From positions 21,142,001 to 21,206,000 of the forward strand of contig NC_083422.1 of assembly GCF_020745735.1 (NCBI RefSeq): a DNA stretch of 64,000 bases, read 5' to 3'. Source of the DNA: Hemiscyllium ocellatum (lineage: Eukaryota). The notes beneath the pieces were generated by a model, which searched no databases, had not been told where the DNA came from, and worked only from the letters and a program-made list of their open reading frames with translations. A program made the position numbers and the translations under genes. Below are positions 10,277 to 62,387 of the stretch, piece by piece (within the stretch, counting starts at the first letter, position 1; each line of letters opens with the position of its first letter).

Positions 10277-10592
10277 CATGATTTGGAGATGCTGGTATTG
10301 GACTGGGGTGTACAAAGTTAAAAATCACACAACACCAGGTTATAGTCCAACAGGTTTAATTGGAAGCACACTAGCTTTCAGAGCAACGCTCCTTCATCAG
10401 GTGATAGTGGAGGGCTCGATTGTAACACAGAATTTATAGCAAAAATTTACAGTGTGATGTAAATTTTTGCTATAAATTCTGTTTTACAATCGAGTCCTCC
10501 ATTATCACCTGATGAAGGAGCGTCGCTCCGAAAGCTAGTGCTTCCAATTAAACCTGTTGGACTATAACCTGATGTTGTGTGATTTTTAACTT
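10277..10592. mobile_element. Palindromic non-coding PLE-type insertion with two inverted hammerhead motifs
   Basis: Arms 10313-10451 and 10458-10594, 6 nt loop, 36 nt extra tail on the left arm, TSD tgcataactga (10266-10276 / 10593-10603). Confidence 0.9.
10506..10540 (+). ncRNA. Minimal type I hammerhead ribozyme motif
   Basis: cac-CTGATGA-A-ggagc(gtc)gctcc-GAAA-GC-TA-gtg. Core intact, palindromic AGCT stem III, predicted cleavage after A10537. An antisense twin lies at 10369-10403. Confidence 0.85.
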
Positions 10593-11155
10593 TGCATAAC
10601 TGAAGTTCCTTATCCCTGAAGCCATTGTCATGAATGTTATCTGCATCATCAGTAAGGCCTTCATATCATTCATAGAGTCATAGAGATTTTACAACATGGA
10701 AAAGGCCCTTTAGCCCATAATTTCCACTCTGGTCATTAAACATCCATCTATTTGAATCTCATTTTCAATCACTGGGCTGGAACCTTTTATGTTATAGCAA
10801 TTTTCAGTGTTCATCTCATTAATGTAGTTCCCAGAACCGTTATATTTTATACATGTTAAACACAACTTCCTTGATTTTATAATATGTGTTGCTAATGATT
10901 AAGCCCAGGATAATGTACACTTTATTAATCGTACTCTCAATCTGTTCTACCACCTTCATTGATTTATACACATATACATCCAGGTTCCTCAGCTCCTGTA
11001 CTCCCTTTAGAATTGTATATTTTGTTTCATATTGTCTCTTAGCATTGTTCCTACTAAAATGAAGAAATCACTCCACAATTCTCAGCCTCTACATTATGGA
11101 CTAATAAGCAATTCATCACCACCTACTTGAAGGCATTTAGAGTTGGGCAATAAAT

Positions 11156-11461
11156 GCGGCACAGTGGTTAGCACTGCTGCCTCACAGTGCCTGAGACCTG
11201 GGTTCAATTCCTGACTCAGGCAACTGACTGTGTGGAGTTTGCACGTTCTCCCTGTGTCTGCGTGGGTTTCTTCCGGGGGCTCCGGTTTCCTCCCACAGTC
11301 CAAAGATGTGCAGGTCAGGTGAATTGGCCATGCTAAATTGTCCGTAGTGTTAGGTAAGGGGTAAATATAGGGGTATGGGTGGGTTGCGCTTCAGCGGGTC
11401 GGTGTGGACTTGTTAGGCCGAAGGGCCTGTTTCCACACTGTAAGTAATCTAATCTAATCTA
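11156..11461 (+). mobile_element. HE1-like V-SINE, near full length
   Basis: tRNA head (cagtggttagc...gggttcaattcc), V-SINE core tgtgtggagtttgcacgttctccc..., HER1-like tail and (aatct)n end. Confidence 0.93.
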
Positions 11462-12710: not shown

Positions 12711-13368
12711 ATTCTCTTTGTTTCTGTTACCTGCCTTTTCAATCTTCTTGGAATTTTGTAATCAGGCTGGCTATTGGTTGTTTTTTCCACCTGACACCTG
12801 TCCACAGTATACTTTTTCGTATTCATCTTCAGTTTTTTTTAATCTAAAGGTGTGGTTCTTTGTTCGCCCAACCTGTTCCCTCCATGGGTGTTTACATTGA
12901 CTGTGCCCAAACAATCTCTTCAGCGACAGTTTTGATTCCAATTTATCCGGATCAGATTCATACAGCATTGAAATTGGCTAACACACTTACTATTGCGCCA
13001 GATTGTTCCTTGCCAATTTTTATCTTAAACCTTATTATAAAATTATCACTATTTTCAAAATGTTCCTGTACTTGATATGTGTGACAACTTGACATACCTG
13101 ATTCGCAAGAGCAAAGTCCACAAATGCCTCTTCTCCCATTGGACTAGAAACTTACTGCCATTGAAAACACCTCTCAACACACACTGGGAACTTTTGACTG
13201 TTGTTTACGCTATTATCCAAGTCTATATTTAGATAGTTAAAGTCCCCCATTATAAATATTCCATATTGTGCACATCGCTGTGATTTCCTTGCTAATTTGT
13301 TCTACTTCTTTCCCATTAGTTGATAATCTAAAGACCTCACTGATCAATCTAGTTGCTCCTTTTTTGTT

Positions 13369-13615
13369 AAAACATAAAAGCAAATTGCTGCGGATGCTGG
13401 AATCTGAAACCAAAAGAGAAAATGCTGGAAAATCTCAGCAGGTCTGGCAGCATCTGTAAGGAGAGAAAAGAGCTGACGTTTCGAGTCTAACTGACCCTTT
13501 GTCAAAAAAAAAGCTTTTTTTTGACAAAGGGTCAGTTAGACTCGAAACGTCAGTTCTTTTCTCTCCTTACAGATGCTGCCAGACCTGCTGAGATTTTCCA
13601 GCATTTTCTCTTTTG
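13369..13615. mobile_element. Palindromic PLE-type insertion with U3-A8 variant hammerheads
   Basis: Arms 13410-13512 and 13515-13616, centre A9-GC-T8, 41 nt extra tail on the left, TSD gctccttttttgtt (13355-13368 / 13616-13630, one extra T on the right). Confidence 0.9.
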
Positions 13616-13793
13616 GCTCCTTTTTTTGTTGTTGCATACTTCTGGGACCTGAGCCTGGCTGCTCTGGGAAATCTGCTGTCTCCTTTTGTTCTCTGAAGCA
13701 ACAATTTCTCCATTTTTCTTTCCTTCCCCATCTTCCCTGAAAACTTTATACTCCAGGAATATTTATTGCACAATCCTGAAACTTGTTGGGATT

Positions 13794-18415: not shown

Positions 18416-18489
18416 ACAGGTGATGTCTCTTTATAACAGCCTGACAAGAGCCAATAATAAAAAGCTTAAAGCAGTGGTGAATTTACAGC

Positions 18490-23400: not shown

Positions 23401-23867
23401 TTGAACATTGAAGGAAATTATTGTCAAATATAAAGGAAGGTGTGACATATAAATCTATGGAAAGACTGCATCTAGTCAAAGACCTCCCTTTGGGCAAAGC
23501 ACACATGCTAATGTTATATTTGGTAACAAGTCCTGTTGTGACAGATTGGCAACTGTCTCCATGCAAAATTACAGCATCTTTGAGCGCTACATCTCAAAAG
23601 TATCCAAGACACAAACTCTTACCTTATAACCAATGTGGGTACATAAGTAAGATAAGTTGTGAACAGTTCCCTTTAGCTGCAGCCTTTTAAGAGACCCACT
23701 TGTTTCAAGCCCCAGGTATTGAGACTACAGCTCCTCTTCTTCATCCGTCCAAATGAATGAAGCCACAAAGGCGTGCATATTAAATAATGAATGTTTAGGG
23801 TAGAAATGTAAGGATATGATCAGGAAGTAGCAAAGAAGCTCAAGCCAGTCTTAGAAATGCATTAATC

Positions 23868-24132
23868 ACTATTGTGGTTCTGTTCGCCGAGCTGGGAATT
23901 TGTGTTGCAGACGTTTCGCCCCCCTGTCTAGATGACATCCTCAGTGCTTGGGAGCCTCCTGTGAATGTTCCGGCACTTATAGGAAACATCACAGAAACGC
24001 TTCACAGGAGGCTCCCAAGCACTGAGGATGTCACCTAGACAGGGGACGAAACATCTGCAACACAAATTCCCAGCTCGGCAAACAGAACCACAACAACGAG
24101 CACCCGAGCTACAAATCTTCTCACAAACATTG
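23868..24132. mobile_element. Palindromic PLE-type insertion (Poseidon-like family) with inverted hammerheads
   Basis: Arms about 23872-23965 and 24001-24093, HHR gca-CTGAGGA...GAAAC(g/a)TC-tgc, 39 nt extra tail on the right, TSD aatgcattaatc (23856-23867 / 24133-24144). Confidence 0.9.
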
Positions 24133-24875
24133 AATGCATTAATCCCAATGGCTCACAGATCCTAATGGGCTTCAGATTAAAGTCATATCAGATTTGTGAA
24201 ACTAATTCCATTGCTTTTCACTGAGGACATTTATTACTGACCAGCTCCATCATAAAAGTCAGAGTCAATGGGTTTCCCACAGGGATCGAGCAGTAGGCCA
24301 ATTTTACACCATTTCATTTATCTTGTTCTTGCTGGTAGATTGGTTTCAAACTGTGACCATAGATTATGAAAACAAAGGAAGGTCATTTATAACCAGTAAA
24401 TTCTGCACAGCCCCTGAGGATAATAGGGGTGCTTTCTTATTAGAGAGAGATGACTGGTGGTGGTTCAACCTGAGGGTCATCACACCTCCGGCAAGGTTGA
24501 GGAAGTGCATCTTCATGGTGACCTCAGCCAATACAGGAACTGAATCTGTGCTGATGGCATTGCTCTGCATCGCCAACCAGCTATATTCAGATTAAATCTC
24601 AAAGCATCATGTTATTTGTCCTTTTTTAAGGATATACATTTTATGAATAGCATGTAGGTTTTTTTCTTTCCATTTTTCACTTTCTTTTGTGTTGTTCTTG
24701 TTCATTCTGGCTGAGTACATTCCAGGCCATTCTTGTTTGTGTACAAAGGTTAAAGAACATAAGAATTGTAGATTATCAAGTTTATAACACATAGGGAATT
24801 CAACTGACCCATTATTCCTCTGTATGTGCTGGATCATCAACAGGATTTATCTATCATAGCAATTTGTAGCACCTC

Positions 24876-25128: not shown

Positions 25129-25900
25129 TATTGTAGAAAAATATCCTAAAGTGAAGTTCCAAAGAAGACTCATTATTTCAAAATATTAATTTTACAGATG
25201 TTGTCAAACCTGCTGAGTTTCTCTAACATATCCTGTTTTTATTATCCAAAGTATTTTGCAGGTTTTGAAAAAATAGGTTCTAACTAATGTGCTCTAATTG
25301 TAACTCAGCATTCTTTCACCAAACTCTAAAGGTGTTAATCACTTGGACAGCATTCCTGGATATGTATTGAAAATTATTTTAGCTTTAATTTTAAGGAATT
25401 TTATGTTCTCCATGCAATTCACTCATGAGTTTTCACATTTGATTATAAAGTTACTACAAATAGATTCAGATTAAGTGAGGTGAAACAGTCTATTTATTCA
25501 TATTGCATCTGACCTGCAGAAATCTCACCATTATACTGTTTGCTCAAACTGCATTGCTGTGAAAAACAATGTCTTTTTGCAGTCAGCTCAGAGTGTGACA
25601 GTCCTCTGGAGGCCTGGAAACCAATGATAAAGTGAAGGAGGCACAGGTTGACTGTTTGCATCATAACCTTGTCATAAGAACTAACATCTTGAAAGGATTT
25701 AGCATTAGCAATTAGGATGGCTTGATACTGCTGCTCTGGCCTTAGATATGGAAGATGAGATTTGTCACGAGGGATGTTTTTACAAAACCATTTCTTCGAT
25801 TCACTGTTTTGTCAAATAACATCATGTGAGCTGTCACAAGTATGGAGGAAAAAAAATGAGTTTCACTAGCTTGACAACTGCTGTAAAAATGTTGAACTGA

Positions 25901-27122: not shown

Positions 27123-28186
27123 ATGGTGCATTCACAATGCTCGAATTTGCAAAGTTCGTAACCCTTTGAGTGAAGTAATTCCTCTTCATTGCAGCCATAA
27201 ATTATCAGCTCTGGAAACCTTACCCCATTGTTCTGGCTGACCTCTGGCTGAGGAAAGAATCCTTCAGATGAGAAGCCCCTTCATAATTTTGAATGTTTAT
27301 CTGCTACCAAGTGATAGATTACATCTTGTAAGGCAATGCCACTTCCCATTTAGGCTCAACAGTGTTCATTCTCTACCATGATTAACCAAATAAGTCCTTA
27401 GACCCAAAGCACTGCAATGGTAGTGTGCCTGTCTGCAGACCAAGTGTCCTGGGTTCAGGTCCCACCTGCTCTAGAGGTGTGTCATAACATCTATGAACAG
27501 GTTGATTTAAAAAATACCTACTTGTGAGTTTTCATTGAGGAAAGAGGATTGTTGGCAGACGTGATCCCAAACATTGCTGAAAGCTCTTGGTTTCCCAGTG
27601 CGTTACAAAAACATTTAGTTATTGTGAGTAGATGTCAAGCAGACAACAAGCACTTGCTCACAGAGGTAACTTGCTCACATTGATATTCACACTGTTTTAA
27701 GTGTAGACGCAGGTTTATATGCCACTATCAATACCAAGAAAACCCCATGTGTCAGATGTCATTAACCACCATCAGAGCTGTTGGCAGAGTATAGGCATGG
27801 TTCTCAGCCTATTACAGGCCTTGACCCAGGCTTGCTGGGCTGTCAGAAGCTGGTGGTGCATCAGAGGCTTGCAGGTCCTGGGTGTTAAGGCCTACTGCTT
27901 TGGGGATCTGGTGACAAGAAGGTAAGTCATCTTTATAAATTTCTGCAGAGTGGGGGTTTTGGGGACAACATATGTGGCGTAGCTTTCAGAGGCCACCTCC
28001 ACTCCCCCATCCAAGTCTTCAATTGCTCCCAGGTTAGAGCAATTGGAGGCCATCCGTATCCCTGCAGGAGGGTTGTTCTGGGAAATTAGCTAACTTTCTC
28101 ATTCACCAGGATGACATGCCATCAGGCAGTTGGTGAGTTAAAACCATTAATTGACAACTTAAGAGCCTTTAATTTTAAACCTCTTG

Positions 28187-29310
28187 TGGCCTCCTTCTTC
28201 AAGGACAAATTTTCCTCCCATGTGGTCAATAATGCTCTCCAACGTGTCTCCACCACTTCTCACACCTCTATCCTTGAAGCTGCAAATGTGTTGCTGGTCA
28301 AAGCACAGCAGGCCAGGCAGCATCTCAAGGCCACCCCTCCAACCGCAACAAGGATAGAATCCTCCTAGTCCTTACCTTCCACCCCACCAATCTCTGGATA
28401 CAACACATCATTCTACGCCATTTCCACCTTCTACAGTCAGAACCCACCACCAGAGATATATTTCCCACATCTATCAGCATTCCGCAGAGACCATTCCCTT
28501 CGCAACTCCCTTGATAGGTCCATGCCCCTCACTGACCCAGCATCTACTCCCGGTACCTTGCCTTGCCACTGCAAAAGGCATAAAACCTGCACCCACACCT
28601 CCCCCCGCCTCACTTCCCTCCAAGGCCCCAAAGGATCCTTCCACCACTGGCAGAGATTTTCTTGCACCTCCAAACACCTCACCTACTGTGTTTCTTGTTC
28701 TTGATGTGGTCTCACCTACATTGGGGAGACAGGACGCCAACTCATGGAATGTTTCAGAGAACATCTCCAGGACACACGCACCAAGCAACTCCACCACCCT
28801 GTGGCCAACCACTTCAACTCCCCCTCCCACTCTGCCAAGTCCTGAGCCTCCTCCACTACCAAATACTAGCCATCCTACGCCTGGATGAGGACCACCTCAT
28901 CTTCCGCCTTGGGACCCTCTAACCACACAGCATCAACATTGATTTCACCAGTTTCCTAATTTCCCCTACCCCCACCTCATCGTACAGCCAATCCTCCAAC
29001 TCGACACCTGCCCTCGTGAACTGTTCTACCTGTCCACCTTCCTTCTCACCTATCCGCTTCACCTTCCACTCCAACCTGCATCTGCCTATCATCTTCCAAA
29101 CTATCTACCCCCAGCCTCACATCCCTCTCATTTATCTTGCAGCCCCCTTCCACCACTGACACACACCGCACCCCCCCCCAATTCCTGATGAAGGGTTTAT
29201 GGCTGAAACATCGACTCTCCTGCTCCTTGATGCTGTCTGACCTGCTGTGTTCTTCGAGTGCCACACTTTTCGACTGTGATATCCAATATCTGCAGTGCTC
29301 ATTTTCTAAC
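28187..29310 (+). mobile_element. Neptune-like PLE, 5'-truncated (RT C-terminus, Zn motif, GIY-YIG, decayed HHR, long tail)
   Basis: ASFFKD..., PCHCKRHKTCTH, tacattggggagacagg (YIGETG), attcctgatgaagggtttatggctgaaacatc. Confidence 0.88.
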
Positions 29311-34812: not shown

Positions 34813-35151
34813 GAGAACAGCCAGAGAATTCCTAGAAGCATGGCATTCATCCCCAAACTCCATTAACAGACACATTGACCTGGACACCATATACAAACCA
34901 CTACAGCTGAAACTGACACCCAGAAACGGCAAGAACATCCATCAACAGACACATCGACCTGGACCCCACATACAAATCACTGCAGTTGAAACTGACACCC
35001 GGAAGCGGCAAGAACAAACCACTATAAATACCGGAAGAAACATCAAAGCAGCGCTTCACACGAGGCTCCAACAGCACTGATGATGTTCCCTAGCCAGGGA
35101 ACGAAACGTTTACAGCAAAAACTTCCAGCTCGGCGAGCAGAACCACAACAA
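34813..35151 (+). mobile_element. Poseidon-like PLE 3' fragment, single arm ending at the short end
   Basis: QRTAREFLEAWHS...INRHIDLD (GIY-YIG C-terminus), HHR at 35074-35113, TSD gggaatttca (34803-34812 / 35152-35161). Confidence 0.88.
35074..35113 (+). ncRNA. Minimal hammerhead motif with one stem I mismatch
   Basis: gca-CTGATGA-T-gttccc(tagcca)gggaac-GAAA-CG-TT-tac. Confidence 0.7.
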
Positions 35152-35830
35152 GGGAATTTCAATGTCCAGCACCAAGAGTGAATCAGCAGCTGATCAAGCT
35201 GGTCGGGTCCTAAAGGACATAACTGCTAGACTAGGTCTGCAGCAGGTGATGAGAAAGCAAACAAAAGGAAAAACATACTTGACCTCATCCTTACCAAGTC
35301 GCCAGCTGCAGATCCATCTGTCCATGAATTGTTAAGAGTGACCACAGGACAGTTCTTGTGGACACAAAGTCCCACCTTCATATTGAGAATACCTTCATGT
35401 TGTGTGACATTATCACTGTGCTAAATGGGACAGACTTTGAACAGTCTGAAGACTGGGTATCCATGAGGTGCTGTGGGCCATCAACAGCAGCAGAACTGTA
35501 CTTTAGCAGAATCTACAACCTTATAGCCCCCCACTACCATCAAGGCAAAGGATTAACCCTGGTTCAATGGAGAGTGCAGGAGGGCATGCCAGGAGCAGCC
35601 CCAAGAATACTTAAAAATTGTGTCAACCTGGTGAAGCCACCAAACAGGACTACCTACATGCCAAACAGCATAAGCAGCCAGTAATAGACAAAAATAAGTG
35701 ATCCCACAACCAACAGATCAGATATAAGTTCTGCAGTCCTGCCACATCCAGTCATGAACGGTGGTGGACAATTAAACAACTCACTAGAGGAGGAGGCTCC
35801 ACAAACATCCCCATCCTCAATGATGGAAGG

Positions 35831-37855
35831 TGAAAATGTATTGTTGGAAAAGCGCAGCAGGTCAGGCAGCATCCAAGGAACAGGAAATTCGACATTTCGG
35901 GCATAAGCCCTTCTTCAGGAATGAGGAAAGTGTGTCCAGCAGGCTAAGATAAAAGGTAGGGAGGAGGGACTTGGGGGAGGGGCGATGGAGATGTGATAGG
36001 TGGAAGGAGGTCAAGGTGAGGGTGATAGGCCGGAGTGGGGTGGGGGCGGAGAGGTCAGGAAGAAGATTGCAGCTTAGGAAGGTGGTGCTGAGTTCAAGGG
36101 ATTTGACTGAGACAAGGTGGGGGGAGGGGAAATAAGGAAACTGGAGAAATCTGAGTTAATCCCTTGTGGTTGGAGGGTTCCCAGGCAGAAGATGAGGCGC
36201 TCTTCCTCCAACCGTCGTGTTGTTATGTTCTGGTGATGGAGGAGTCCAATGACCTGCATGTCCTTGGTGGAGTGGGAGGAGGAGTTAAAGTGTTGAGCCA
36301 CGGGATGGTTGGGTTGGTTGGTCCGGGTGTCCCAGAGGTGTTCTCTGAAACGTTCCGCAAGTAGGCGGCCTGTCTCCCCAATATAGAGGAGGCAACATCG
36401 GGTGCAGCAGATGCAATAGATGATGTGTGTGGAGGTGCAGGTGAATTTGTGGCAGATATGGAAGGATCCCTTGGGGCCATGAAGAGAAGTAAGGGAGGAG
36501 GTGTGGGCGCAAGTTTTGCATTTCTTGTGGTTGCAAGGGAAGGTGCCGGGATTGGAGGTTGGGTTGGTGGGGGGTGTGGACCTGACGAGGGAGTCACGGA
36601 GGGAGTGGTCTTTTCGGAACGTTGATGGGGGAGGGGAGGGAAATATATTCCTGGTGGTGGGGTCCGTTTGGAGGTGGCGGAAATGACGGCGGATGATACG
36701 CTGTATATGGAGGTTGGTAGGGTGGTAGGTGAAAACCAGTGGGGTCTGGTCCTGGTGGCGGTTGGAGGGGCGAGGCTCAAGGGCGTAGGAGTGGGAAGTA
36801 GAGGAGATGCGGTGCATCTCCTCCACTTCCCGCTCTCCACCGCATCTCCTCCACTTCCCGCTCCTCCGCTCTTGAGCTCCGCCCCTCCAATCGCCACCAG
36901 GACAGAACCCCACTGGTTTTCACCTACCACCCCACCAACCTCCATATACAGCGTATCATACGTCGTCATTTCCGCCACCTCCAAACGGACCCCACCACCA
37001 GGGATATATTTCCCTCCCCTCCCCTACCAGCGTTCCGAAAAGACCACTCCCTCTGTATCTCCCTCGTCTGGCCCACACCCACCACCAACCCAACCTCCAC
37101 TCCTGGCACCTTCCCCTGCAACAGCAAGAAATGCAAACCTTGCGCCCACACCTCCTCCCTTACTTCTCTCCAAGGCCCCAAGGGATCCTTCCAAAGCCGC
37201 CACAAATTCACCTGCACCTCCACACACATCATCTATTGCATCCACTGCACCCGATGTGGCCTCCTCTATATTGGGGAGACAGGCCGCCTACTTGCGGAAC
37301 GTTTCAGAGAACACCTCTGGGACACCCGGACCAACCAACCCAACCACCCCGTGGCTCAACACTTTAACTCACCCTCCCACTCCACCAAGGACATGCAGGT
37401 CCTTGGACTCCTCCATCGCCAGAACATAACAACACGACGGTTGGAGGAAGACCACCTCATCTTCCACCAGGGAACCCTCTAACCACAAGGGATGAACTCA
37501 GATTTCTCCAGTTTCCTCATTTCCCCTCCCCCCACCTTGTCTCAGTCAAATCCCTTGAACTCAGCACCGCCCTCCTAACCTGCAATCTTCTTCCTGACCT
37601 CTCTGCCCCCACCCCACTCCGGCCTATCACCCTCACCTTGACCTCCTTCCACCTATCGCATCTCCATCACCCCTCCCCCAAATTCCTCCTCCCTACCTTT
37701 TATCTTAGCCTGCTGGACACACTTTCCTCATTCCTGCAGAAAGGCTTATGCCTGAAACGTCGAATTTCCTGTTCCTTGGATGCTGCCTGACCTGCTGTGC
37801 TTTTCCAGCAACACATTTTCAGCTCTGATCTCCAGCATCTGCAGACCTCACTTTC
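35831..37855. mobile_element. Neptune-like PLE, about 1 kb inverted arms
   Basis: ORF 36074..36913 (-) contains PCNHKKCKTC...YIGETGR. Foldback centre at 36811-36813, 34 nt extra tail on the right, TSD tcctcaatgatggaagg (35814-35830 / 37856-37872). Confidence 0.95.
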
Positions 37856-39689
37856 TCCTCAATGATGGAAGGACCAAGCAGTACAAAAGGTAAGGCTGAA
37901 GCATTCACAGCAATCTTCAGCCAGAAGTGTTGAGTGCACGATTCATCTCTGCCTCCACCAATGGTTTCCAACGTTACAGATACCAATCTTCAGCAATTTA
38001 ATTCACTCCAAGTGACATCAAGAAATGGGTGTCAACACTGGGTACTGCGAAGACAGTAGGTCCTGACAACAATAGTATTGAAGACTTGTGCTCCAGAACT
38101 CGTGACACCCCTAGGCAAGCTGTTCCAGTACAGTTACCACACTTGCATTTACCCGACAATATGGAAAATTGCTCAGGTATATCCTGCACACAAAAAGCAA
38201 ACCAAGTCCAACCTGGCCAATTACCGCCCCATTAATCATCTCTAGATCATCAGTAAAGTGGTGGAGGGTGCCGTCAACAGTGCTGTCAAGCAGCACCTGC
38301 TTCAGCCATAACCTGCTCAGTGACGCCCAGTTTAGGTTCCAACAGGACCACTCACCTCCTGACCTCATTACAGCCTTGGTTCAAACATGGACAAAAGAGC
38401 TGAATTCCAGAGGTGAGGTGAGAGTGACAGCCCTTGACATCAAGGCTGCATTACTCTGAGTGTGGCATCAAGGAGCCCTAGCAGAACTAGAATCAGTGGT
38501 TATTGGGGGCAAACTCTCCGCTGGTTAGAGTCATATCTGATACATAGGAAGATGGTCTTAGTTGTTGAAGGTCAGTCATCTCAGCTGCGGAACATCACTG
38601 CAGGAGTTTCTCAGGATAGTGTCCTAGGCCCAACCATCTTCAGCTTCTTCATCAACGACCTTCCCTCCATCCTAACGTCAGAAGTGGGTAAGTTTGTTGA
38701 TGATTGCACAATGTTCAGCACTAATCTCAATTCCTCAGATACTGTATCCGTCCATATTGAAATGCAACAAGATTTGAATCATATCCAGGTTTGGGCTGAC
38801 ACATGACAAATAATATTCATACCGCACAAATGTCAGGCAATGATCACCACCAACAAAGGGAAATCTAACCACCGCCCCCTTTGGGACATTTGGTGGTGTC
38901 ACTATCACTGAATCCCTCACTATCAACATCCTGGGGGCTACCATTGACCAGAAACTCAGCTGGACTCACTACATAAACACAGTAGCTACAAGAGCAGATC
39001 AGAGACTAGGGACAAAAGGACTGCCCTCAAAACCTGCCCATTATCTGCAAGGCGTAAGTTAGGAGTGTGATTGAATACTTCTCAGTTTCCTGGATGGGTC
39101 CAGCTCAAGTTCCAGCAACCCTACAGAAGCTTGACACCATCCAGGACAAAGCAGCCCACTTAATTGGTATTATATCCAGAAACATCTACTCCCTCCATCA
39201 CTGATGCTCAGTAGCAGCAGAGTGTACTATCTATAAGGTGCACTGCAGAAATTCACCAAAGATCCTTAGTTAGCACTTTCCAATCCAGCAATAACTTCCA
39301 TCCAGAATGATGAGAGCAGCAGATATAGGGGAGCACCACCACCTGCACATTTCCCTCCAAGTCACTCTCCATCCTGACATGGGAATATATCGTCATTCCT
39401 TCACTGTCATTGGGTCAAAATCCTGGAATTCCCTTCCTAATGGCAGTTCATGTCTACCTACAGCATGTGGACTGCAGTGGTTCAAGAAGCCACCTTCATA
39501 AGGGTCTAGTAGGGACAGGCGATAACTGCTGACCTACCTGTGACACCCACATCCCACGAAGGAATGATTTTAAAAAGTCAATGAATGAAGTCTGGAATTA
39601 ATTTTGATGAGCAATATGCATAGTTTGCCATGTGGAATTATGATGTTGTGGTGATAACGCAGATCTAGCTGAAGGAAAGGCAGGACTGT

Positions 39690-42380: not shown

Positions 42381-44339
42381 GACCTCATAGTCCCACAACC
42401 CCGCACCGCCTGTTTCTACCTCCTGCCCAAAATCCACAAACCTGACTGCCCCGGCTGACTCATTGTCTCAGCCTGCTCCTGCCCCACTGAACTCATCTCT
42501 GCATATTTCGACACGGTCCTGTCCCCGTTAGTCCAAGAACTCCCACCTACGTTCGGGACACCACCCATGCCCTCCACCTCCTCCATGATTTTCGCTTCCC
42601 CGATCCCCAATGCCTTATCTTCACCATGGACATCCAGCCCCTGTACACCTCCATCCCCAATCATGAAGGACTCAAAGCCCTCCGCTTCTTCCTTTCCCAC
42701 CGAACCAACCAGTACCCTTCCACTGACGCCCTCCTTCGACTGACTGAACTGGTCCTCACTCTGAACAACTTCTCTTTCCAATCCTCCCACTTCCTCCAAA
42801 CCAAAGGAGTAGCCATGGGCACCCACATGGGCCCCAGCTATGCCTGCCTCTTCATAGGATATGTGGAACAGTCCATCTTCCGCAGCTACACTGGCACCAC
42901 CCCCCACCTTATCCTCTGCTACATCAATGACTGTATCGGCGTTGCCTGGTGCTCCCACAAGGAGGTTGAACAGTTCATCCACTTTATCAACACCTTCCAC
43001 CCCGACCTCAAATTTACCTGGACTGTCTCAGACTCCTCCCTCTCCTTCCTGGGCCTCTCCATTTCTATCTCGGGCGACCGAATCAACACGGACATTTAAT
43101 ATAAACCGACCGACTCCCACAGCTACCGAGACTACACCTTCTCCCACCCTGCCCCTTTAAAAACGCCATCCCATATTCCCAATTCCTTCGTCTCTGCTGC
43201 ATCTGCTCCCAGGAGGACCAGTTCCAATACCGAACAACCCAGATGGCCTCCTTCTTCAAGGACCGCAATTTCCCCTCAGACGTGATCAACAATGCTCTCC
43301 ACCACATCTCCTCCACTTCCCGCTCCTCCGCCCTTGAGCCCTACCCCTCCAATCGCCACCAGGACAGAACCCCACTGGTGCTCACCTACCACCCCACCAA
43401 CCTCAATATATATCACATCATCTGTCGTTATTTCCGCCACCTCCAAACGGATCCCACCACCAGGGATATATTTCCATCCCCTCCCCTATCAGCGTTCTGA
43501 AAAGACTACTCCCTCTGTGACTCCCTTGTCAGGTCCACATCCCCCACCAACCCAACCTTCCCTCCTGGCACCTTCCCATGCAACTGCAAGAAACGCAAAA
43601 CTTACGCCCACACCTCCCCCCTTACTTCCCTCCAAAGTCCCAAGGGATCCTTCCATATCAGCCACAAATTCACCTGCACCTCCACACACATCATTTACTG
43701 CATCCACTGCACCCAAAGCACCCGAAGCACCCGAAGTGGCCTCCTCTATATTGGGGAGATAGGCCGCCTACTTGCGGAACGTTTCAGAGAACACCTCTGG
43801 GACACCCGGACCAACCAACCCAACCACCCCGTGGCTCAACCCTTCAACTCCCCCTCCCACTCCACCAAGGACATGCAGGTCCTTGGACTCCTCCATCGCC
43901 AGACCATAGCACCACGACGGTTGGAGGAAGAGCGCCTCATCTTCCGCCTAGGAACCCTCCAACCACAAGGGATGAACTCAGATTTCTCCAGTTTCCTCAT
44001 TTCCCCTCCCCCCACCTTGTCTCAGTCCCAATCTTCGAACTCAGCACCGCCCTCCTAACCAGCAATCTTCTTCCTGACCTCTCCGCCCCCACCCCTACTC
44101 CGGCCTATCACCCTCACCTTAACCTCCTTCCACCTATCGCATTTTCAATGCCCCTCCCCCAAGTCCCTCCTCCCTACCTTTTATCTTAGCCTGCTTGGCA
44201 CACTCTCCTCATTCCTGAAGAAGGGGTCATGCCCGAAACGTCGAATTTCCTGTTCCTTGGATTCTGCCTGACCTGCTGCGCTTTTCCAGCAACACATTTT
44301 CAGCTCTGATCTCCAGCATCTGCAGTCCTCACTTTCTCC
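42381..44339 (+). mobile_element. Neptune-like PLE, single arm, RT plus GIY-YIG (decayed), long tail
   Basis: FYLLPKIHK, FTMDIQPLYTSIP, GVAMGTHMGPSYA, YINDC, YIGE; HHR at 44211-44246. Confidence 0.93.
44211..44246 (+). ncRNA. Minimal hammerhead motif, sense to DNTT and not part of a palindrome
   Basis: attc-CTGAAGA-A-gggg(tcat)gccc-GAAA-CG-TC-gaat. Predicted cleavage after C44242; palindromic ACGT stem III. Confidence 0.8.
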
Positions 44340-47130: not shown

Positions 47131-47926
47131 GATGTACTTCTGTCAGACTTTATATGTTTCATGTTCCACTGTCCTGAGAATGCATCAGCAGAACTAAATT
47201 GGCAACATTCAATAAAGGCTCACCAAGTGATAAACCATGAAGACATTGTATGAAATTTTACCAGTCCCTGTTGGCAGGGATGAGATGCCAAAATCCCCTT
47301 GATGAATTTCCCATTATCCTCACACTAGCCCCCAATCTGTTTGTAATATAATTTGCCCTCACTCCAATTGAGACCTGTAATTGGGCAATTAATGACCACT
47401 GAAGGGCCACACTGTACCTGATTTGTTTGTTTGGGAGGAGTTCAGGAGGAGGGTAGATGGCCAAAGGGTTGCCTTGTCAGGACTTGTGCTATCAGGGTGG
47501 GGCCCATCTCCTTCAGTGGGTTTCTTTCCCAAAAGGTCAGTCTCTCACATCCCCTCACAGCCTACTGACCTTTCCATGAAGGCCCACAGTCTCTCGCTGC
47601 ATCTCGCTGTGCCTCACCTCTCTAGCCAGTTAAGGATCCTTGAATGATTACATGTCTTTAATAAAGTGGGGAGATATTACTGACTCAGGTGGAGGGACAC
47701 AAAGTCCTGTCCTGTAAAAAAATCTTCACGCAGATTTTCCACATCAAATGCACAGTTGATGTTAACATTAGATTTCTACCTCTTGTGGTTAATCAGTTAT
47801 GAACTTTTTGACTGAAGCAAATATTTGTCAAGTAATTCCTTGGAACTGCTCCCATTCCACTGGCATCACATGTAGTCAGGAATTCTATTGTATCAATGGC
47901 AAGGCAACATATGCAAAGCAAAAGCA

Positions 47927-48132
47927 GGATTAGAGTGGTGCTGGAAAAACACAGCAGGTCAGGCAGCATCCGAGGAGCAGGAACATTGACGTTTCAGACA
48001 AAAGGATGATGGGCTTTTGCCCAAAACACTGATTTTCCTGCTCCTCAGATGCTGCCTGACCTGCTGTGCTTTTCCAGCACCACTGTAATCTTGACTCTAA
48101 TCTCCAGCATCTGCAGTACTCACTTTTGCCAC
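47927..48132. mobile_element. Palindromic PLE tail element with decayed hammerhead
   Basis: Arms meet at about 48000, 42 nt extra tail on the right, TSD agcaaaagca (47917-47926 / 48133-48142). Confidence 0.85.
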
Positions 48133-50089
48133 AGCAAAAGCAAGTCTGAGGAACTGCTTAGCCATCATTCTTTCATAATAAAAAGATTGTCAGATACTAT
48201 AAGGAGTGTTGTTGCATTAATATATATTCAGGGACACTGCCCTATTGGGGATGCTCCTTTTAAGATAGTAAAGTTAAGTCCTCTCTTCTTTCCCTTTTGA
48301 TCATGAATATCCCTTGGTACTGGATCCCAACATGGGATTTCTCCCTGACTCACTGCCAATATCCACTCCACAATCACATTTCTCAAACATACTGTTTTGC
48401 CATGATCACGTTTTTGTTTTGGGAGCTTACTGTGCACACTTCAGCTGACTTCTCTCCTACATTTCAGGACTGTGTTTCATATGTTCTTCATCAACTGTAA
48501 AGAGCTTTGAGGTGCTCTGAAGCCACGAATAGTGTATTATAAATGCTAATTCCTCATTCTAACATTCAACTAACAGAGCAAAAGATATCAAGGGAAATGC
48601 AATTGTACTTCCCTCATTTTATTTTCTTTATTATGATTCTATGCAACTCACCTAATGATACAAGTGATGCAGTCTGGCCAAACATTGCTCAGTCCATTGA
48701 CTTCTTGAAGGTAAATATCTATGCTCCATCTACTAGAAGAGGCCAAGTCAAACTATTAATTCCATATAACACTGTAACTACAGCAGTTCTCCAAGAGTTG
48801 CTAAAATTTAAACAAAATTAATACCAGTGTAAAATCACTTCCTTTGCTTTTTGACATCTGTCTAAATGGTCTATACATAATGGCAGTATACGCTAATGTG
48901 AATGCTCATCAATGCACGATGCTTTTATTCTGGCATTTGTATTCCAAGGATCAAGTATGGATTTAATCATGGTTTGCTGAACCAGGGTTACTGGAGCATC
49001 TCTTTGCAAAAATTAAATTGGTTACCTGCCCATTGTAGCCCAAACCAAATTTTCAAGACTTTTTTGATATTTTTCTAAGCACTAGCATTAATTTAATGAG
49101 GCATCTGTTCTTGTTCCAATTGTGTTTTGTTGCACATTGTTTTTGTACTATCTTATCTATAACATCTGCAGTAGTTTGAAATTATAATTGCAGCAGAGGT
49201 TTTAAAAGATGCACCTTCTGCTTGTTCCAGGAATTTAATTCAAAAGAAATCATAAAACTAAAACTGCCAAAACGGCTTTTTAAGAATCTGAGCTAGTTGC
49301 AACTGAGTTAACAGTGGATAATATTCAACAATATCCTTAATCTATCACTAAATGTATTGAAGGTGCTATTTGTTTCCAAGTGACAACAAACTCTGAAAAC
49401 CCACCTGGTCTAAATGCTTAAAGATTATTTCAGAATCTCTGCTATTCAGTGGATGCATTAAGCCATTAATTTTAAACATGTTCCGGATGTCACGGGCAGA
49501 AGTTATGTATTTTCTCACTTCTAGTGATCATTGAGTTTTGCATATGGGGCCTGAGTGTCTACTCACCTTCAGTGTGCCCCAATTTAAATGATGCCGACAG
49601 TAAGTTTATTTTGATTGGTTTGAAATGAAAAGTTCTTTTAATACCCCATACTTGCCCTTGAAGTTTATAAATGTGACATCTAACTCATTTGCCTGACACA
49701 ATTATTCACACAAAAACTGGATGCAGATGGAGAAAAAAGGACACTGCAGTTACAGAGCATAATTGTCTCTGTTTTTCATTTGTGACAGGCCTGTAGTTCC
49801 TTAGATAAGTGTATGTTTTAGCTATGGTGACATTTTTGTAATGTAAAGGATTCTCACTAAGCTGCAAGGCCTCCGTTAGTCAAATTTCAAGTAAATTTAG
49901 TTCTCAGTTGAGCTTGAAATCGTAATACGCTGGGAAGAATTTTCTTCCACTTTCAGGATATTGCTGTTTGTTATTTTGGTTGATTAAGTGACTTGCAGCA
50001 GGTTCAATGTATTTGTAATGAACTCTGTTGGATCTCCTATCACTAAACAGCTTCTTCCTATATTTTAAAAGTGAACAGAAAGCATGTCT

Positions 50090-51423: not shown

Positions 51424-51534
<111 letters not shown>

Positions 51535-52859: not shown

Positions 52860-53590
52860 AATGCAGCTCTCTAACACTTTAGCTTGGCAACATTTGGAGT
52901 ATTGTATGCGTTTCAGGTTAAAAAATGAGGTCTGCAGATGCTGGAGATCACAGCTGCAAATGTGTTGCTGGTCAAAGCACAGCAGGTTAGGCAGCATCTC
53001 AGGAATAGAGAATTCCTGAGATGCTGCCTAACCTGCTGTGCTTTGACCAGCAACACATTTGCAGCTGCGTTTCAGGTTGCCATACTATAGGAAGGATGTG
53101 GAGTCTTTGGAAAGGGTGAAAAAGAGGTTGACCAGGATGTCACCTGGATTGGGATGTACTAGCTGTAAGAAGAGAAGGGACAAACTTAGATTGTTTTCAC
53201 TAGAGTATTGAAGGCTGAGGCGTGACCTAATACGAGTATATAAAATTATGACAAGCATTAACAGGATGGATAGTTAGAATACTTTTCCCAAGGTGGAAAT
53301 ATCAAATACCAGGGAGCACAGTTTTCAGTGAGAGTGGGAAAATTTAATGTGTGAGACAAGTGTTTTATGCAAGGGATGGTAGGTGCCTGGAACATACTGC
53401 CTGGGGAAGTTGTAGAAGCAGATACGATAGTAATGTTTAAGAGGAATTCCGACAGACCCATGACCAGGCAGGGAATAGAGGGATATGGACCATGTGCAGG
53501 GAGATGGATTAATTTGGAATGGCATAATGGTTGGCAGAGAGATGGTGAGCTGAAGGGCCTATTCCTGTACTGTACAGTTTGATGTTCTGT
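52860..53590 (+). mobile_element. CR1 3' end, host to the 52920 insertion
   Basis: LEYCM|..PYYRKDV is continuous across the insertion; CR1 3' UTR. Confidence 0.8.
52920..53065. mobile_element. 146 bp palindromic PLE tail, lacking the hammerhead core
   Basis: Centre ggaat-agaga-attcc, 33 nt extra tail on the left, TSD tgcgtttcaggtt (52907-52919 / 53066-53078). Confidence 0.9.
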
Positions 53591-57739: not shown

Positions 57740-59720
57740 ATAAGACATAGAAGTCAAAGTAGGCCATTCAACCTATTAAATTTGTCCCATCAGACTTGCT
57801 GATCATGCCTTATCTGACAATCCTCAACTCCACTTTGTTGCCTTTCCCCAAAATCCTGGAATCCCTTAATGATTAAAAATCTGTCTTTCTCAGGCATGAA
57901 TATACTTAATGACCTCACCTCAACAGCCCATTATATAAAGAATATAACAGATTATCAGGTAGAAGTAAAATCCTTATCATCTATGTCTTAAATGTGTGAC
58001 GCCTTATTCTGAGATTATGCCCTCTGTTCCTTTGCTCTCCCATAGGGGAAACAATCTCTCCACATATACCTTATCAAGTCCTCCTAGACTCTTATATATT
58101 TCAATAAGATCATCTCCCAAACTTCTATATTGCAGTGAGTATAGGCCCAATTTACTTAACCTCTCCTTATAAAACAATCACTCTATATTGCTTGTCAGGT
58201 TCATGATATCAGCTCTTCTCTGGGCTACCTCCAATGCCAGTGTACATTTCCTTCGATAAGACACCTAAAATTGTTCACAGTATTCCAGCTATGGGCTAAC
58301 TAGTGTGTTGAATGGTTTAGCAAACCTTTCCTACTTTTAATATTCCATTCCTTTTGGAATAAAGGCCAACATTCCATTTGTGTGCCCATGTCCGCTGAAC
58401 TTGGATATAAACTTTTTGTGATTCATGGACAAGAACTCCCAAATCCCTTTGTATTGTAGCTTCCTGCACTGTTGCAGAGTTGTGGGAACGAAAGTAGTAG
58501 GTCAGTAAGGGCAATGATTGAGGTAGAGCTTAAGTCAAGTAAGTTTAATAGGGAGAGCAAGCAGGGCCAAGTTAATAAACATGGTGGGATTGGAGATTCT
58601 GGAGGTTTATTTCAATGCAAGGAGTATAAAAGATAAGACAGACAAGCTTAGAACCTGGATTAGTTACCAGAACTATGAAACTGTAGCCATTACAGAAACT
58701 TGGTTGAAAGAAGGGCAGGACTGGCAGCTCAATGTTCCAGAGTTTGGATGTTTCAGTTGTGATAGAGAATGATGTAAAAGGGATGGGGGAGTTGCATTAC
58801 TGATTTATGGAGAATGCCATAGCTGTAATAAGTGAGGATATCTGGGATGACTCATCCACAGTTACTATATGGGGGGAGGAATAAGAAAGGTTCAATCCTG
58901 TTATGCCAAATTATAAGCAGGAAATAGAGGAACAGATATGTAAGCAGATTATGGAAGGATGTAAAAACAACAAAGTTGTTGTAGAGGGTTATTTTAACTT
59001 CCCCAATATTGACTGGGACTCACTTAATTCCAAGGGCAAAGTTGGTGCATCCAGGAGGGTTTGTTGAAACAGTATGTAGATAGTCCAACTAGGGAGGTGG
59101 CCACATTAGATGTTGTTTTAGGGAGATGCCTGACCAGGTGATTGAAGTTTCAGTGGGAGACCATTTTGGGAACAGTGATCATAATTCCAGTTTTAGTTAT
59201 GGATAAGAATAAGACTGGTCTTTTGGTGAAAGTGCTAAATTAGGGGAAGGCATATTACAGTAATATTAAGCAGGAACTGGAGAAATTAGATTGGGGCAGC
59301 TGTTTGAGGGTAAATCTACATCAGACATGTGAGAGTCTTTTGATCACGGTGTAGGACCAGCATGTTCCTGCGAGGATGAAAGGTGAGGATGGCAAGATTC
59401 AGCAACCATTGATGACAAGTGATATTGAAAGAAATTAGTCAAAAAGAAAGAGAAAAGGTGTAAAGTTTAGGAAACTGAAATCAGACAAGTCCTTGAGGAA
59501 TGTAAAGGAAGCAGGTAAGAAGTTAAACGAGGAATTAGGAGAGATAAAGTCAATTAAATGCCCTTGGACAAGTAGGATAAATGAAAATTGCAACTCATTT
59601 ACAAGTATATTAGAAGCTAGAGGGTAACCAACGAAAGAGTAGGTCCATTCAAGGACAAAGGATAGATTTATGCCCGGAGTCAGAGGAAGTGGGTGAGATT
59701 CTGGATGAGTTAGGACATGG
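57740..59720. mobile_element. CR1 pieces: antisense 3' end (about 57740-58460) joined to a sense APE/linker (about 58470-59720)
   Basis: ORF 58581..58772: YFNARSIKDK...VAITETWLKEGQDWQLNV is the CR1 APE N-terminus. Confidence 0.8.
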
Positions 59721-59872
59721 ATAATGGTAACATCAGTGAGGGCTAACTGAAGTTGCCAAAATCCCATTTTGACTTCCATGTCAGGAATTCTCCGCATCCA
59801 GCTTACTTGCCTCAGCTGGTACAATGGGAAACTGCATATTAGTGAGTCACGATTGGCAGTTAATAAGATTGC

Positions 59873-62387
59873 GAGTGAAAAATGAGGTCTGCAGATGCTG
59901 GAGATCACCGCTGAAAATGTGTTGCTGGTCAAAGCACAGCAGGCCAGGCAGCATCTCAGGAATAGGGAATTCGATGTTTCGAGCATAAGCCCTTCATCAG
60001 GAATGAGAGAGAGTAGCCAAGCGGGCTAAGATAAAAGGTAGGGAGGAGGGACTTGGGGGAGGGGCGATGGAGGTGGGATAGGTGGAAGGAGGTCAAGGTG
60101 AGGGTGATAGGCCAGATGGGGTGGGGGCAGAGAGGTCAGGAAGGAGATTGCAGGTTAGGAGGGCGGTGCTGAGTTGAGGGAACCGACTGAGACAAGGTGG
60201 GGGGAGGGGAAATGAGGAAACTGGAGAAATCTGAGTTCATTCCTTGTGGTTGGAGGGTTCCCAGGCGGAAGATGAGGCGCTCCTCCTCCAGCCGTCGTGT
60301 TGTTGTGTTCTGCCGGTGGAGGAGTCCAAGGACCTGCATGTCCTCGGTGGAGTGGGAGGGGGAGTTAAAGTGTTGAGCCACGGGGTGGTTGGGTTGGTTG
60401 GTCCGGGCGGCCCAGAGGTGTTCTCTGAAGCGTTCCGCAAGTAAGCGGCCTGTCTCCCCCAATATAGAGGAGGCCACATCGGGTGCAGCGGATGCAATAG
60501 ATGATGTGTGTGGAGGTACAGGTGAACTTGTGGCGGATATGGAAGGATCCCTTGGGGCCTTGGAGGGAAGTGAGTGTGGAGGTGTGGGCGCAAGTTTTAC
60601 ATTTCCTGCGGTCGCAGGGGAAAGTGCCGGGGGTGGAGGTTGGGTTGGTGGGGGGTGTGGATCTGACGAGGGAGTCACGAAGGGAGTGGTCCTTGCGGAA
60701 CGCTGATAGGGGAGGGGAGCCCATGCGGGTGCCCATGGCAACTCCTTTAGTTTGGAGGAAGTGGGAGGATTGAAAAGAGAAGTTATTCAGGGTGAGGACC
60801 AGTTCAGTCAGTCGAAGGAGGGTGTCAGTGGAAGGGTACTGGTTGGTGCGGCGGGAAAGGAAGAAGCGGAGGGCTTTGAGTCCTTCGTGATGGGGGATGG
60901 AGGTGTACAGGGACTGGATGTCCATAGTGAAAATAGTGAAAATGCCTGCCTCTTCGTAGGATATGTGGAACAGTCCATCTTTCGCAACTACACTGGCACC
61001 ACCCCCCACCTTTTCCTCCGCTACATCGATGACTGTATCGGCGCTGCCTCGTGCTCCCACGAGGAAGTTGAACAGTTCATCAACTTTACTAACACCTTCC
61101 ATCCCGACCTTAAATTCACCTGGACTGTCTCAGACTCCTCCCTCCCCTTCCTAGACCTTTCCATCTCTATCTTGGGCGACCAACTCAACTCAGACATCTA
61201 CTATAAACCGACTGACTCCCACAGCTACCTGGACTACACCTACTCCCACCCTGCCCCCTGCAAAAACTCCATCCCATATTCCCAATTCCTTCGTCTCCGC
61301 TGCATCTGCTCCCAGGAGGACCAGTTCCAACACCGCACAGCCCAGATGGCCTCCTTCTTCAAGGACCGCAGATTCCCTCCAGACGTGATCGACGATGCCC
61401 TCCACCACATCTCATCCACTTCCTGCTCCTCCGCCCTTGAGCCCCGCTCCTCCAACCGCCACCAAGACAGAACCCCACTGGTTCTCACCTACCACCCCAC
61501 CAACCTCCTAATACAACGTATCATCCGCCGTCATTTCCGCCACCTCCAAACGGACCCCACCACCAAGGATATATTTCCCTCCCCTCCCCTATCAGCGTTC
61601 CGCAAGGACCACTCCCTTCGTGACTCCCTCGTCAGATCCACACCCCCCACCAACCCAACCTCCACCCCCAGCACTTTTCCCTGCGACCGCAGGAAATGTA
61701 AAACTTGCGCCCACACCTCCACACTCACTTCCCTCCAAGGCCCCAAGGGATCCTTCCATATCCGCCACAAGTTCACCTGTACCTCCACACACATCATCTA
61801 TTGCATCCGCTGCACCCGATGTGGCCTCCTCTATATTGGGGAGACAGGCCGCTTACTTGCGGAACGCTTCAGAGAACACCTCTGGGCCGCCCGGACCAAC
61901 CAACCCAATCACCCCGTGGCTCAACACTTTAACTCTCCCTCCCACTCCACCGAGGACATGCAGGTCCTTGGACTCCTCCACCGGCAGAACACAACAACAC
62001 GACGGCTGGAGGAGGAGCGCCTCATCTTTCGCCTGGGAACCCTCCAACCACAAGGTATGAATTCAGATTTCTCCAGTTTCCTCATTTCCCCTCACCCCAT
62101 CTTGTCTCAGTCGGTTCCCTCAACTCAGCACCACCCTCCTAACCTGCAATCTCCTTCCTGACCTCTCCGCCCCCACCCCACTCCGGCCTACCACCCTCAC
62201 CTTGACCTCCTTCCACCTATCCCACCTCCATCGCCCCTCCCCCAAGTCCCTCCTCCCTACCTTTTATCTTAGCCCGCTTGGCTACTCTCTCTCATTCCTG
62301 ATGAAGGGCTTATGCTCGAAACATCGAATTCCCTATTCCTGAGATGCTGCCTGGCCTGCTGTGCTTTGACCAGCAACACATTTTCAG
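59873..62387. mobile_element. Young Neptune-like PLE, rearranged inverted structure
   Basis: The plus arm has an open frame from 60942 (ACLFVGYVEQ...RYIDDC...CDRRKCKTC...YIGETGR...), with HHRs in both arms. 38 nt extra tail on the left; TSD agttaataagattgc (59858-59872 / 62388-62402). Confidence 0.95.
62294..62329 (+). ncRNA. Minimal hammerhead motif with ACAT stem III variant
   Basis: attc-CTGATGA-A-gggc(ttat)gctc-GAAA-CA-TC-gaat. The same variant occurs in the antisense arm near 59970-60005. Confidence 0.7.

Follow-up and report, generated by a model that had tools for sequence, protein, structure and literature searches.

The window analysed here is a 64,000-nt stretch of the genome of the shark Hemiscyllium ocellatum (GCF_020745735.1, NC_083422.1, 21,142,001-21,206,000), and all positions below count from its first nucleotide. 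It contains seven palindromic insertions, E1 to E7, each of which is the product of a single integration event of a canonical, endonuclease-bearing (EN+) Penelope-like element (PLE). Each product is made of two inverted, 5′-truncated DNA copies of the 3′ end of the element, and the two copies end 33-42 nt apart; the long, downstream 3′ end is designated L and belongs to the tailed arm, and the short, upstream 3′ end is designated S. The overall best explanation, and a probable one, is that these are PLE integration products made from two start sites of reverse transcription, perhaps used on one RNA. The palindromes are best explained as dead-on-arrival by-products of integration, not as a separate class of mobile element.

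Seven palindromes within target site duplications

A previous reading of this DNA, made from the letters alone (the sequence-only reading), had listed seven head-to-head palindromes with outward 3′ ends, a target site duplication (TSD) and an extra tail on one arm. Repeat searches in each interval recovered an inverted repeat with a flanking direct repeat in all seven, and the coordinates and lengths proved right to 1-3 nt. The arms are head-to-head with their 3′ ends outward in 7/7 insertions, exactly one arm of each carries the tail, and the tail motif CCAGCATCYGCAG occurs once in each of the seven palindromes. The TSD lengths agree with those claimed, E2 having 12-14 bp and E5 10 bp (13 with one mismatch). 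Because an intact TSD flanks the entire palindrome, each palindrome represents one integration event. The insertions and their parts are as follows (body lengths are given as L/S).

E1, 10266..10603: TSD TGCATAACTGA (11 bp), 10266-10276 and 10593-10603; tail 10277-10312 (reverse strand, 36 nt); L arm 10313-10451; spacer 10452-10457; S arm 10458-10592; bodies 145/135 nt; minimal hammerhead CTGATGA-A-GGAGC..GCTCC-GAAAGCTA in both arms
E2, 13355..13628: TSD (G)CTCCTTTTTTG (12-14 bp, T-run differing by 1), about 13355-13366 and 13617-13628; tail 13367/13369-13409 (41-43 nt); L arm 13410-13512; S arm 13514-13616; virtually spacer-free, centre AAGCTT; bodies 103/103 nt
E3, 23856..24144: TSD AATGCATTAATC (12 bp), 23856-23867 and 24133-24144; S arm 23868-23965, outer 4 nt (23868-23871) unmatched; spacer 23966-24000; L arm 24001-24093; tail 24094-24132 (39 nt); bodies 128/94 nt; hammerhead CTGAGGA...GAAACGT/GAAACAT in both arms
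E4, 35814..37872: TSD TCCTCAATGATGGAAGG (17 bp), 35814-35830 and 37856-37872; S arm 35831-36813; centre 36814-36837; L arm 36838-37821; tail 37822-37855 (34 nt); bodies 1008/983 nt; arms hold the C-terminal part of the open reading frame (ORF; GIY-YIG region) and the 3′ untranslated region (UTR) with a hammerhead
E5, 47917..48142: TSD AGCAAAAGCA (10 bp; 13 with one mismatch), 47917-47926 and 48133-48142; S arm 47927-48004; spacer 48005-48013; L arm 48014-48093; tail 48094-48132 (39-42 nt); bodies 89/78 nt
E6, 52907..53078: TSD TGCGTTTCAGGTT (13 bp), 52907-52919 and 53066-53078; tail 52920-52952 (33 nt); L arm 52953-53015; S arm 53012-53065, about 9 nt shorter; bodies 63/54 nt
E7, 59858..62402: TSD AGTTAATAAGATTGC (15 bp), 59858-59872 and 62388-62402; tail 59873-59910 (38 nt); L arm 59911-60719, resumed at 60720-60935; filler 60936-60943; S arm 60944-62387; bodies 1670/1444 nt

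Of the 17-bp TSD of E4, 3-5 nt may be microhomology templated by the element; in reads of a related species, the long end of this family is at 37858-37860. E7 is among the youngest palindromes, with arms 98% alike, and E5 is the oldest, with an arm-to-arm likeness of 85%; the 56-nt arms of E6, which meet at a GAATTC palindrome, are 100% identical. CpG-type changes make up only about one quarter to one half of the arm differences, which does not decide whether the two arms started out identical.

A scan of the whole window for inverted repeats (≥30 nt, ≤3 kb apart) returned exactly E1-E7 plus two pairs formed by scattered, unrelated SINE-like (short interspersed element) copies; since this unbiased scan gave just these, E1-E7 are not a choice of convenient cases. 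The two extra pairs, 5715-5836/6508-6629 and 3986-4054/5768-5836, were rejected as PLE palindromes. They come from separate copies of an unrelated repeat (GGTTCAATTTTAACCTCAGGTGACTGC...) present at 5715-5836, 6508-6629 and 3986-4054 in both orientations, and are the only other inverted pairs of the window.

Sub-threshold Rfam matches to microRNA precursors lie on five of the palindrome centres (13474-13552, 23929-24037, 36725-36927, 47951-48068 and 52977-53041). They reflect hairpin shape alone; the palindromes, if transcribed, would fold into long hairpins.

Penelope-like identity and related copies

The S arm of E7 contains an ORF (60944-62158) in which ...YIDDCIG... is followed by ...IIYCIRCTRCGLLYIGETGR... 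in one frame; for the group of E4, E7 and C42 (a solo copy), too, ...YIDDCIG... precedes ...LLYIGETGR... in one frame. Reverse transcriptase (RT) followed by GIY-YIG is the hallmark order of canonical PLEs. The Pfam support is weak but concordant and suggests both domains: GIY-YIG matched with E=1.6e-4 (22.3 bits vs a cutoff of 22.6) and RVT_1 with E=2e-3 on the upstream piece of a solo copy, C42, both just below the curated cutoffs, and look-alike protein clusters carry HTH_animal, RVT_1 and GIY-YIG. The elements show features by which canonical EN+ PLEs are recognized: a single ORF with RT and then C-terminal GIY-YIG, an inverted 5′-truncated copy inside one TSD (7/7), a 30-40 bp tail at a single end (33-42 nt, one per insertion) and, in the copies named below, a minimal type-I hammerhead in the terminal region. 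PLE copies in the window are all 5′-truncated and none shows a direct tandem of pseudo-long terminal repeats (pLTRs); short-unit head-to-tail joints are present in contigs of the same species.

Three sequence families are represented, namely E1, E3, and E2/E4/E5/E6/E7, E1 and E3 being two separate further families. Within the third, E4, E7 and C42 are about 90% alike, and E5, E6 and, more distantly, E2 have the last ~100 nt of this E4/E7/C42 family in common. The window also holds the following solo copies.

42616..44336, forward: C42, solo copy of the E4/E7 family, 5′-truncated, long-site end (44336); native collinear reference
28186..29306, forward: old diverged solo copy, ~70% alike to E4, long-site end
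28278-28330, reverse: nested fragment of 49-53 nt inside the preceding copy, young E6/E7 subfamily, 98% alike
35038..35151, forward: E3-family solo copy, short-site end; canonical minimal hammerhead CTGATGA-T-GTTCCC..GGGAAC-GAAACGT
9947..10040, reverse: old E2-like solo copy passing the short site into the tail (TTTCTGATCTCCAGC...)
25192..25245, forward: E2-like solo fragment (old, ~55 nt) with its end near the short site and no tail

The RT coding sequence of C42 extends upstream to at least about 42480; just upstream of this copy, an ORF fragment at 41437-41703 has an RT motif (VDVMYIGFEKVF...) of the long interspersed element (LINE) type and belongs to another retroelement. The interval 28278-29306 was considered as an eighth palindrome and rejected: its inverted 53-nt piece is 98% like E7, the adjoining copy only 70%, and the reading frame of the old copy resumes on both sides of the piece, which marks it as a later nested fragment. 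This fragment has a short-site end (28280), lies in the ORF of the old copy without a recognizable TSD, and may represent an aborted cDNA of very small size that was trapped at a break.

Two discrete 3′ ends

In the E4/E6/E7 family, the S end (...ACATTTTCA / CAG / GCAGC) falls within 3 nt in four independent insertions, and the L end lies 33-38 nt beyond it, within about 5 nt. Solo copies stop at the same two places; three have the long end (44336, 29306 and ~9947) and three or four the short end (35151, 28280, ~25245 and probably ~55).

Raw reads of a related species were aligned to the E4 end (window 37690-37880, a 191-nt reference); H. ocellatum itself was represented by short contigs (unitigs of ~60 nt). 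Among 12.9 million reads, 117,127 (0.9%) match this 191-nt 3′ end. Read depth is ~88,000 just before the short site, forms a plateau of ~45,000-51,000 over the tail and drops to zero after 37860, and 29,064 loose ends at 37858-37860 run into unrelated AT-rich flanks. A second reference, the E7 tail (59850-60060), matches the dominant subfamily of that species poorly and alignments break at 59928, so that short-ended copies do not align and the long:short ratio from it is biased. The bimodal 3′ endpoints that the sequence-only reading had set as a check are borne out in that the ends are discrete among the window copies and the read depth falls in two steps; at the genome-wide scale, bimodality is supported but not proven.

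Two other kinds of joint were seen in these data. Some reads on the E4 and E7 ends reach the long end and then resume 33-36 nt earlier, just past the short site, as a tandem tail-tail duplication. In some contigs the 5′ edge of the ribozyme is joined head-to-tail to the long end, giving a retrozyme-like tandem with a unit of ~130 nt.

Pairing of ends, coupling of arms and polarity of the centre

Each of the seven palindromes combines one L end with one S end. Were the two ends of a palindrome drawn independently of each other, at a long-end frequency of 40-57%, this would occur with P = 0.006-0.008; among solo copies, unlike palindromes, L (3) and S (3-4) are about equally frequent. The arms are also coupled at their 5′ ends, in that only 7 of 5040 rank permutations of E1-E7 fit as well (p=0.0014). 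Arm lengths lie within 0-34 nt of each other in 6/7 palindromes, arms of ~1000 nt included; the two arms of E4, which are of this size, end within 25 nt of each other.

The spacer is in the orientation of the L arm in all five cases with a native reference (E3-E7; sign test 0.03). It measures 35 nt in E3, where it is the native continuation of the L arm, 6 nt plus a re-copied segment of 22 nt in E4, about 10 nt in E5, about 9 nt in E6 and 216 nt in E7. The segment in E4 is a direct duplication of GCATCTCCTCCACTTCCCGCTC (36814-36835 and 36842-36863) in L-arm orientation with GCTC microhomology at its borders, and resembles the outcome of a template switch that was repeated where synthesis turned around. 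The E5 spacer was assigned to the L arm since GATGATGGG matches native GATGAAGGG. In E6 the L arm starts at exactly the next nucleotide after GAAACATC, the predicted hammerhead cleavage site. At a CCCC microhomology, the L strand of E7 passes over 645 nt of native sequence, and it resumes 4-9 nt upstream of the end of the S arm.

In the reads of the related species, opposite-strand joints recur, and in those with the best support the 5′ edge of the ribozyme is connected to a tail that comes to an end only a few nt from S. Such joints would correspond to an L-primed arm reduced to its tail, as would be expected if S was occupied on the same RNA.

In three unrelated families, a tail segment of 7-9 nt is complementary to the body (GATGCTG/CAGCATC, TTGGACT/AGTCCAA and AGCTCGG/CCGAGCT), and a tail-body stem appears in the minimum-energy folds of all seven elements (shuffle P 0.0025-0.17 per element). 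As modelled, this stem would enclose S, which lies 8-14 nt before the 3′ strand of the stem, and L would follow 16-26 nt after the stem. The loop so enclosed in E3 is AC-rich and resembles the start-site stem-loop of the Anolis PLE.

Hammerhead ribozymes

The pattern CTGANGA-N8-26-GAAAYRT has nine matches in the window against 0.26 expected, an enrichment of ~35-fold, and eight of them are inside PLE copies. No hammerhead match was obtained with the Rfam models Hammerhead_1, Hammerhead_3, Hammerhead_II, HH9 and HH10 at the gathering threshold or E<=10, as expected because the motifs are without helix III. They have an extra nucleotide before stem II, a G10.1-C11.1 pair and a palindromic ACGU/AGCU at 15.1-16.1. 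Descriptors of minimal hammerheads of PLEs have been published (PMC4209133) and, read by hand, appear to fit E1, E3, E4, E7, C42 and the solo copy at 35038.

The sequence-only reading had presented the palindromes at large as double-ribozyme hairpins. A hammerhead is predicted in both arms only in E1, E3, E4 and E7 (4/7), one E4 arm being mutated to CTGCAGA. The core of E2 is degenerate (TTGACAA in both arms), departing from CUGANGA at C3 and G8, positions needed for activity; the arms of E5 are truncated and start within the ribozyme, and E6 has no ribozyme, its arms starting past the cleavage site.

Both arms of E7 (59974-60000 and 62298-62324) have GAAACATC in place of GAAACGTC, which breaks the palindromic 15.2-16.2 pair. 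This pair is needed for the dimeric ribozyme, and the change is consistent with a ribozyme that is dispensable for insertion. On the reverse strand, a frame at 59435-59986 has its ATG inside hammerhead loop II (MLETSNSLFLRCCLACC...) and crosses the short site ~76 nt and the long site ~114 nt downstream; it is not conserved in the E4 subfamily.

A possible mechanism with one RNA and two start sites

According to published work (Frangieh et al., 2024; PMC11167929), PLE RNA has two RT start sites, to which L and S correspond, and each of the two nicked target strands is able to prime. In that work, the Anolis carolinensis Poseidon (PAc) protein nicked and extended both DNA strands, and reverse transcription started at two adjacent internal stem-loop sites, the genomic tail being the sequence between them. 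The sequence-only reading had correctly pointed to work on Anolis with two nearby initiation sites. A TSD of 10-17 bp would imply staggered nicks leaving 3′ overhangs.

A single RNA would be held by one, probably dimeric, ribonucleoprotein (RNP). One target strand would prime at S and the other at L, and the L/S pairing in 7/7 would follow because each site is used once. The S-primed cDNA would lead and stop first, at a pause or at the 5′ end of the RNA, and the L-primed cDNA would follow on the same RNA to a point a few to a few hundred nt beyond the stop of the S-cDNA. It would be either blocked at the occupied S, giving the tail-only class, or displace its sister and overrun it. In the latter case microhomology would let it change template to the sister cDNA, at the 3′ end set free, and copying back to the target would close the palindrome. 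In E7 the L strand apparently hopped over a stretch still occupied by the sister cDNA. A short RNA template, for example the 3′ self-cleavage product of the hammerhead as E6 suggests, would yield a non-coding mini-palindrome.

This scheme accounts for the pairing, the arm coupling, the spacer polarity, the start of E6, the skip in E7, the tail-only joints and the stem. That a single RNA served as template for both arms, and that synthesis then switched to the sister cDNA, has somewhat less than an even chance of being correct. A more specific form is less likely still: a concerted two-strand reaction in which the site within the conserved stem and the site just past it are brought by a dimeric RNP into its two active sites, and the L-cDNA chases the S-cDNA and stops at it or switches onto it. 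If it is true, mini-palindromes, tail-only arms and the skip-and-land of E7 are direct genomic footprints of concerted integration from one RNA, and hammerhead-cleaved 3′ fragments suffice as templates.

Several points weigh against this interpretation. In vitro, either strand used either start site without preference (PMC11167929). There are just seven palindromes from one 64-kb window, and the pairing figures come from these palindromes alone, since a palindrome is not spanned by short reads or de Bruijn contigs. The spacers of E5 and E6 are merely 9 nt, that of E1 is not orientable and E2 is spacer-free. The tail-only class is an exception to the rule that L arms equal or exceed S arms in length, the skip in E7 could instead be a later palindrome-driven deletion, and the stem shuffle P values are modest per family (0.0025-0.17). 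Part of the step in read depth reflects subfamily divergence, as 8,345 reads depart from the reference at 37814 and carry on in the sequence of a different subfamily, and a nucleotide-level peak at the short site is absent among the best-supported loose ends listed for the related-species reads on the E4 end.

Alternative explanations

The sequence-only reading had proposed that each target strand primes its own cDNA at one of two RNA sites and that the two cDNAs join at the centre; in the corresponding rival model, a separate RNA would serve each strand, one copied from L and one from S, and the independent cDNAs would be joined. The two endpoints, and the cleavage and extension of both strands from two start sites in vitro (PMC11167929), agree with priming by each strand. 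The S arm of E7 has 645 nt that are missing from the L arm and was therefore not copied from it, and hammerhead-cleaved RNAs would have a common 5′ end, which would explain the symmetry of E6. Two RNAs, however, give no reason for an obligatory L/S pairing (7/7), and leave unexplained the ~1000-nt arms of E4 that end within 25 nt, the constant L-side spacer, the L-primed products stopping at S and the landing of the E7 skip beside the S-arm end. Independent cDNAs merely joined at the centre are disfavoured because the 5′ truncation points are coupled (p=0.0014) and the spacer is always on the L arm, and the proposal as a whole is distinctly unlikely. A snap-back, in which the L-primed cDNA folds back, copies itself, halts 33-42 nt short (e.g. 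at protein or RNA on the tail) and is joined to the other target end, would explain the equal arms, their near-identity, the L-side spacer and the start of E6. Self-priming has indeed been proposed for palindromes at inverted PLE junctions (Arkhipova et al., 2013; PMC3846280), and the centres of E5 and E6 lie on self-complementary stem II and on the GAATTC palindrome, respectively. Snap-back is nevertheless unlikely, as S would have to be a termination point that coincides by chance with the start site of the solo copies (35151, 28280 and ~25245) and with that used in vitro; S ends are no less precise than L ends, and the S arm of E7 holds sequence missing from the L arm, which snap-back could accommodate only through a deletion at a later time.

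It is very improbable that the mini-palindromes replicate as non-autonomous units through hairpin RNA from a palindromic master, with the asymmetry inherited. The very high copy number (0.9% of related-species reads touch the 191-nt 3′ end), the existence of tandem-type joints and the recurrence of some opposite-strand joints at one position (e.g. 59928/59928, 50 reads) would suit such copying, but the read joint coordinates are scattered across many nearby positions and the centre differs in every palindrome of the window. E4 and E7, from one family, have arms of 983/1008 and 1444/1670 nt, and the skip and the 216-nt central piece are found in E7 alone; moreover, an S-ended arm is without the 3′ strand of the stem around the start site. 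Miniature inverted-repeat transposable element (MITE)-like DNA transposons with terminal inverted repeats (TIRs), or chance inverted repeats, would share with E1-E7 the inverted repeats and the flanking direct repeats. Such DNA transposons have TSDs of fixed length and symmetric ends, whereas the TSDs here vary from 10 to 17 bp, which excludes a TIR transposon, and the ends are unequal by a fixed tail. With arms collinear with the 3′ end of an RT/GIY-YIG element and a hammerhead motif enriched ~35-fold, this origin has next to no probability.

Significance

How PLE integration is completed, and how the inverted repeats and the one-sided tail originate, is still an open question; later steps such as second-strand synthesis and repair still await experimental validation (PMC11167929). 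H. ocellatum and its relatives carry this PLE 3′ end in very large numbers, and young mini-palindromes bounded by TSDs preserve, for one integration event at a time, its two ends and its centre. Because they do so, a genome census could discriminate between one RNA, two RNAs and snap-back without biochemistry. The palindromes are also a hazard for assembly and annotation, and yield spurious microRNA-like matches.

Comparison with known systems

Canonical EN+ PLEs (Penelope/Poseidon and Neptune) share with the shark insertions the head-to-head inverted 5′-truncated copy, the 30-40 bp tail at one end, the variable TSD, the minimal hammerhead in the terminal region and the ORF with RT and then GIY-YIG. 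In Fig. 2 of Craig et al. (2021; PMC8557442), a PLE insertion is drawn with an inverted 5′-truncated copy and a one-sided tail, and inverted pLTRs within one TSD, one of them with a 31-bp tail, have been described in Adineta vaga (PMC3846280). Unlike in these two reports, both shark arms are truncated, with no full-length copy or direct pLTR between them, and the extreme cases are 146-316 bp long and non-coding, one of them without a ribozyme. Neither report states the strict L/S pairing or the polarity of the centre.

The PAc system resembles the shark elements in its two adjacent internal RT start sites that bound the tail, a start in a stem-loop, AT-rich flanks and, for PAc, nicking and extension of both strands. 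Insertion by PAc does not require the hammerhead, in keeping with the young E7 subfamily, where both arms have GAAACATC. In contrast to PAc in vitro, where either strand used either site, the shark sites were used once each per insertion. They are in the 3′ UTR, ~60-100 nt after the ribozyme, and may or may not lie within an ORF start as those of PAc do; the PAc ORF starts in the ribozyme and its RT starts lie 111-118 nt into the ORF, which may be compared with the loop II frame of E7 and its sites at ~76 and ~114 nt.

L1 twin priming likewise involves both target strands as primers within a single event, as would be the case here. The two products of L1 twin priming come from adjacent, non-overlapping parts of one RNA, whereas the shark arms copy the same 3′ region and overlap fully; only the inner part of E7 (60720-62387) has the exact L1 topology, with adjacent breakpoints between 60720-60935 and 60944 onwards. 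Non-long terminal repeat (non-LTR) retrozymes (bioRxiv 10.64898/2026.07.22.740005) are likewise short, non-coding, hammerhead-bearing and abundant derivatives of PLE termini. Unlike these, which form head-to-tail tandem arrays and are thought to circularise, E1-E7 are dispersed, single head-to-head units with TSDs, and that report mentions neither a tail nor a palindrome.

Literature searches returned nothing specific on shark PLE palindromes or on PLE twin priming, nor the non-coding mini form, its very high abundance, or the regularities of pairing, arm coupling, polarity and stem. The suggestion in the sequence-only reading of an undescribed class may hold for the extreme non-coding mini form and its abundance, absent from the literature searched, and goes too far for the architecture, which is already in PMC8557442 and PMC3846280. 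This architecture is the published PLE integration signature in new PLE families, not a new system, and the regularities of pairing, polarity and stem, drawn from seven cases and indirect read evidence, are refinements of a known mechanism.

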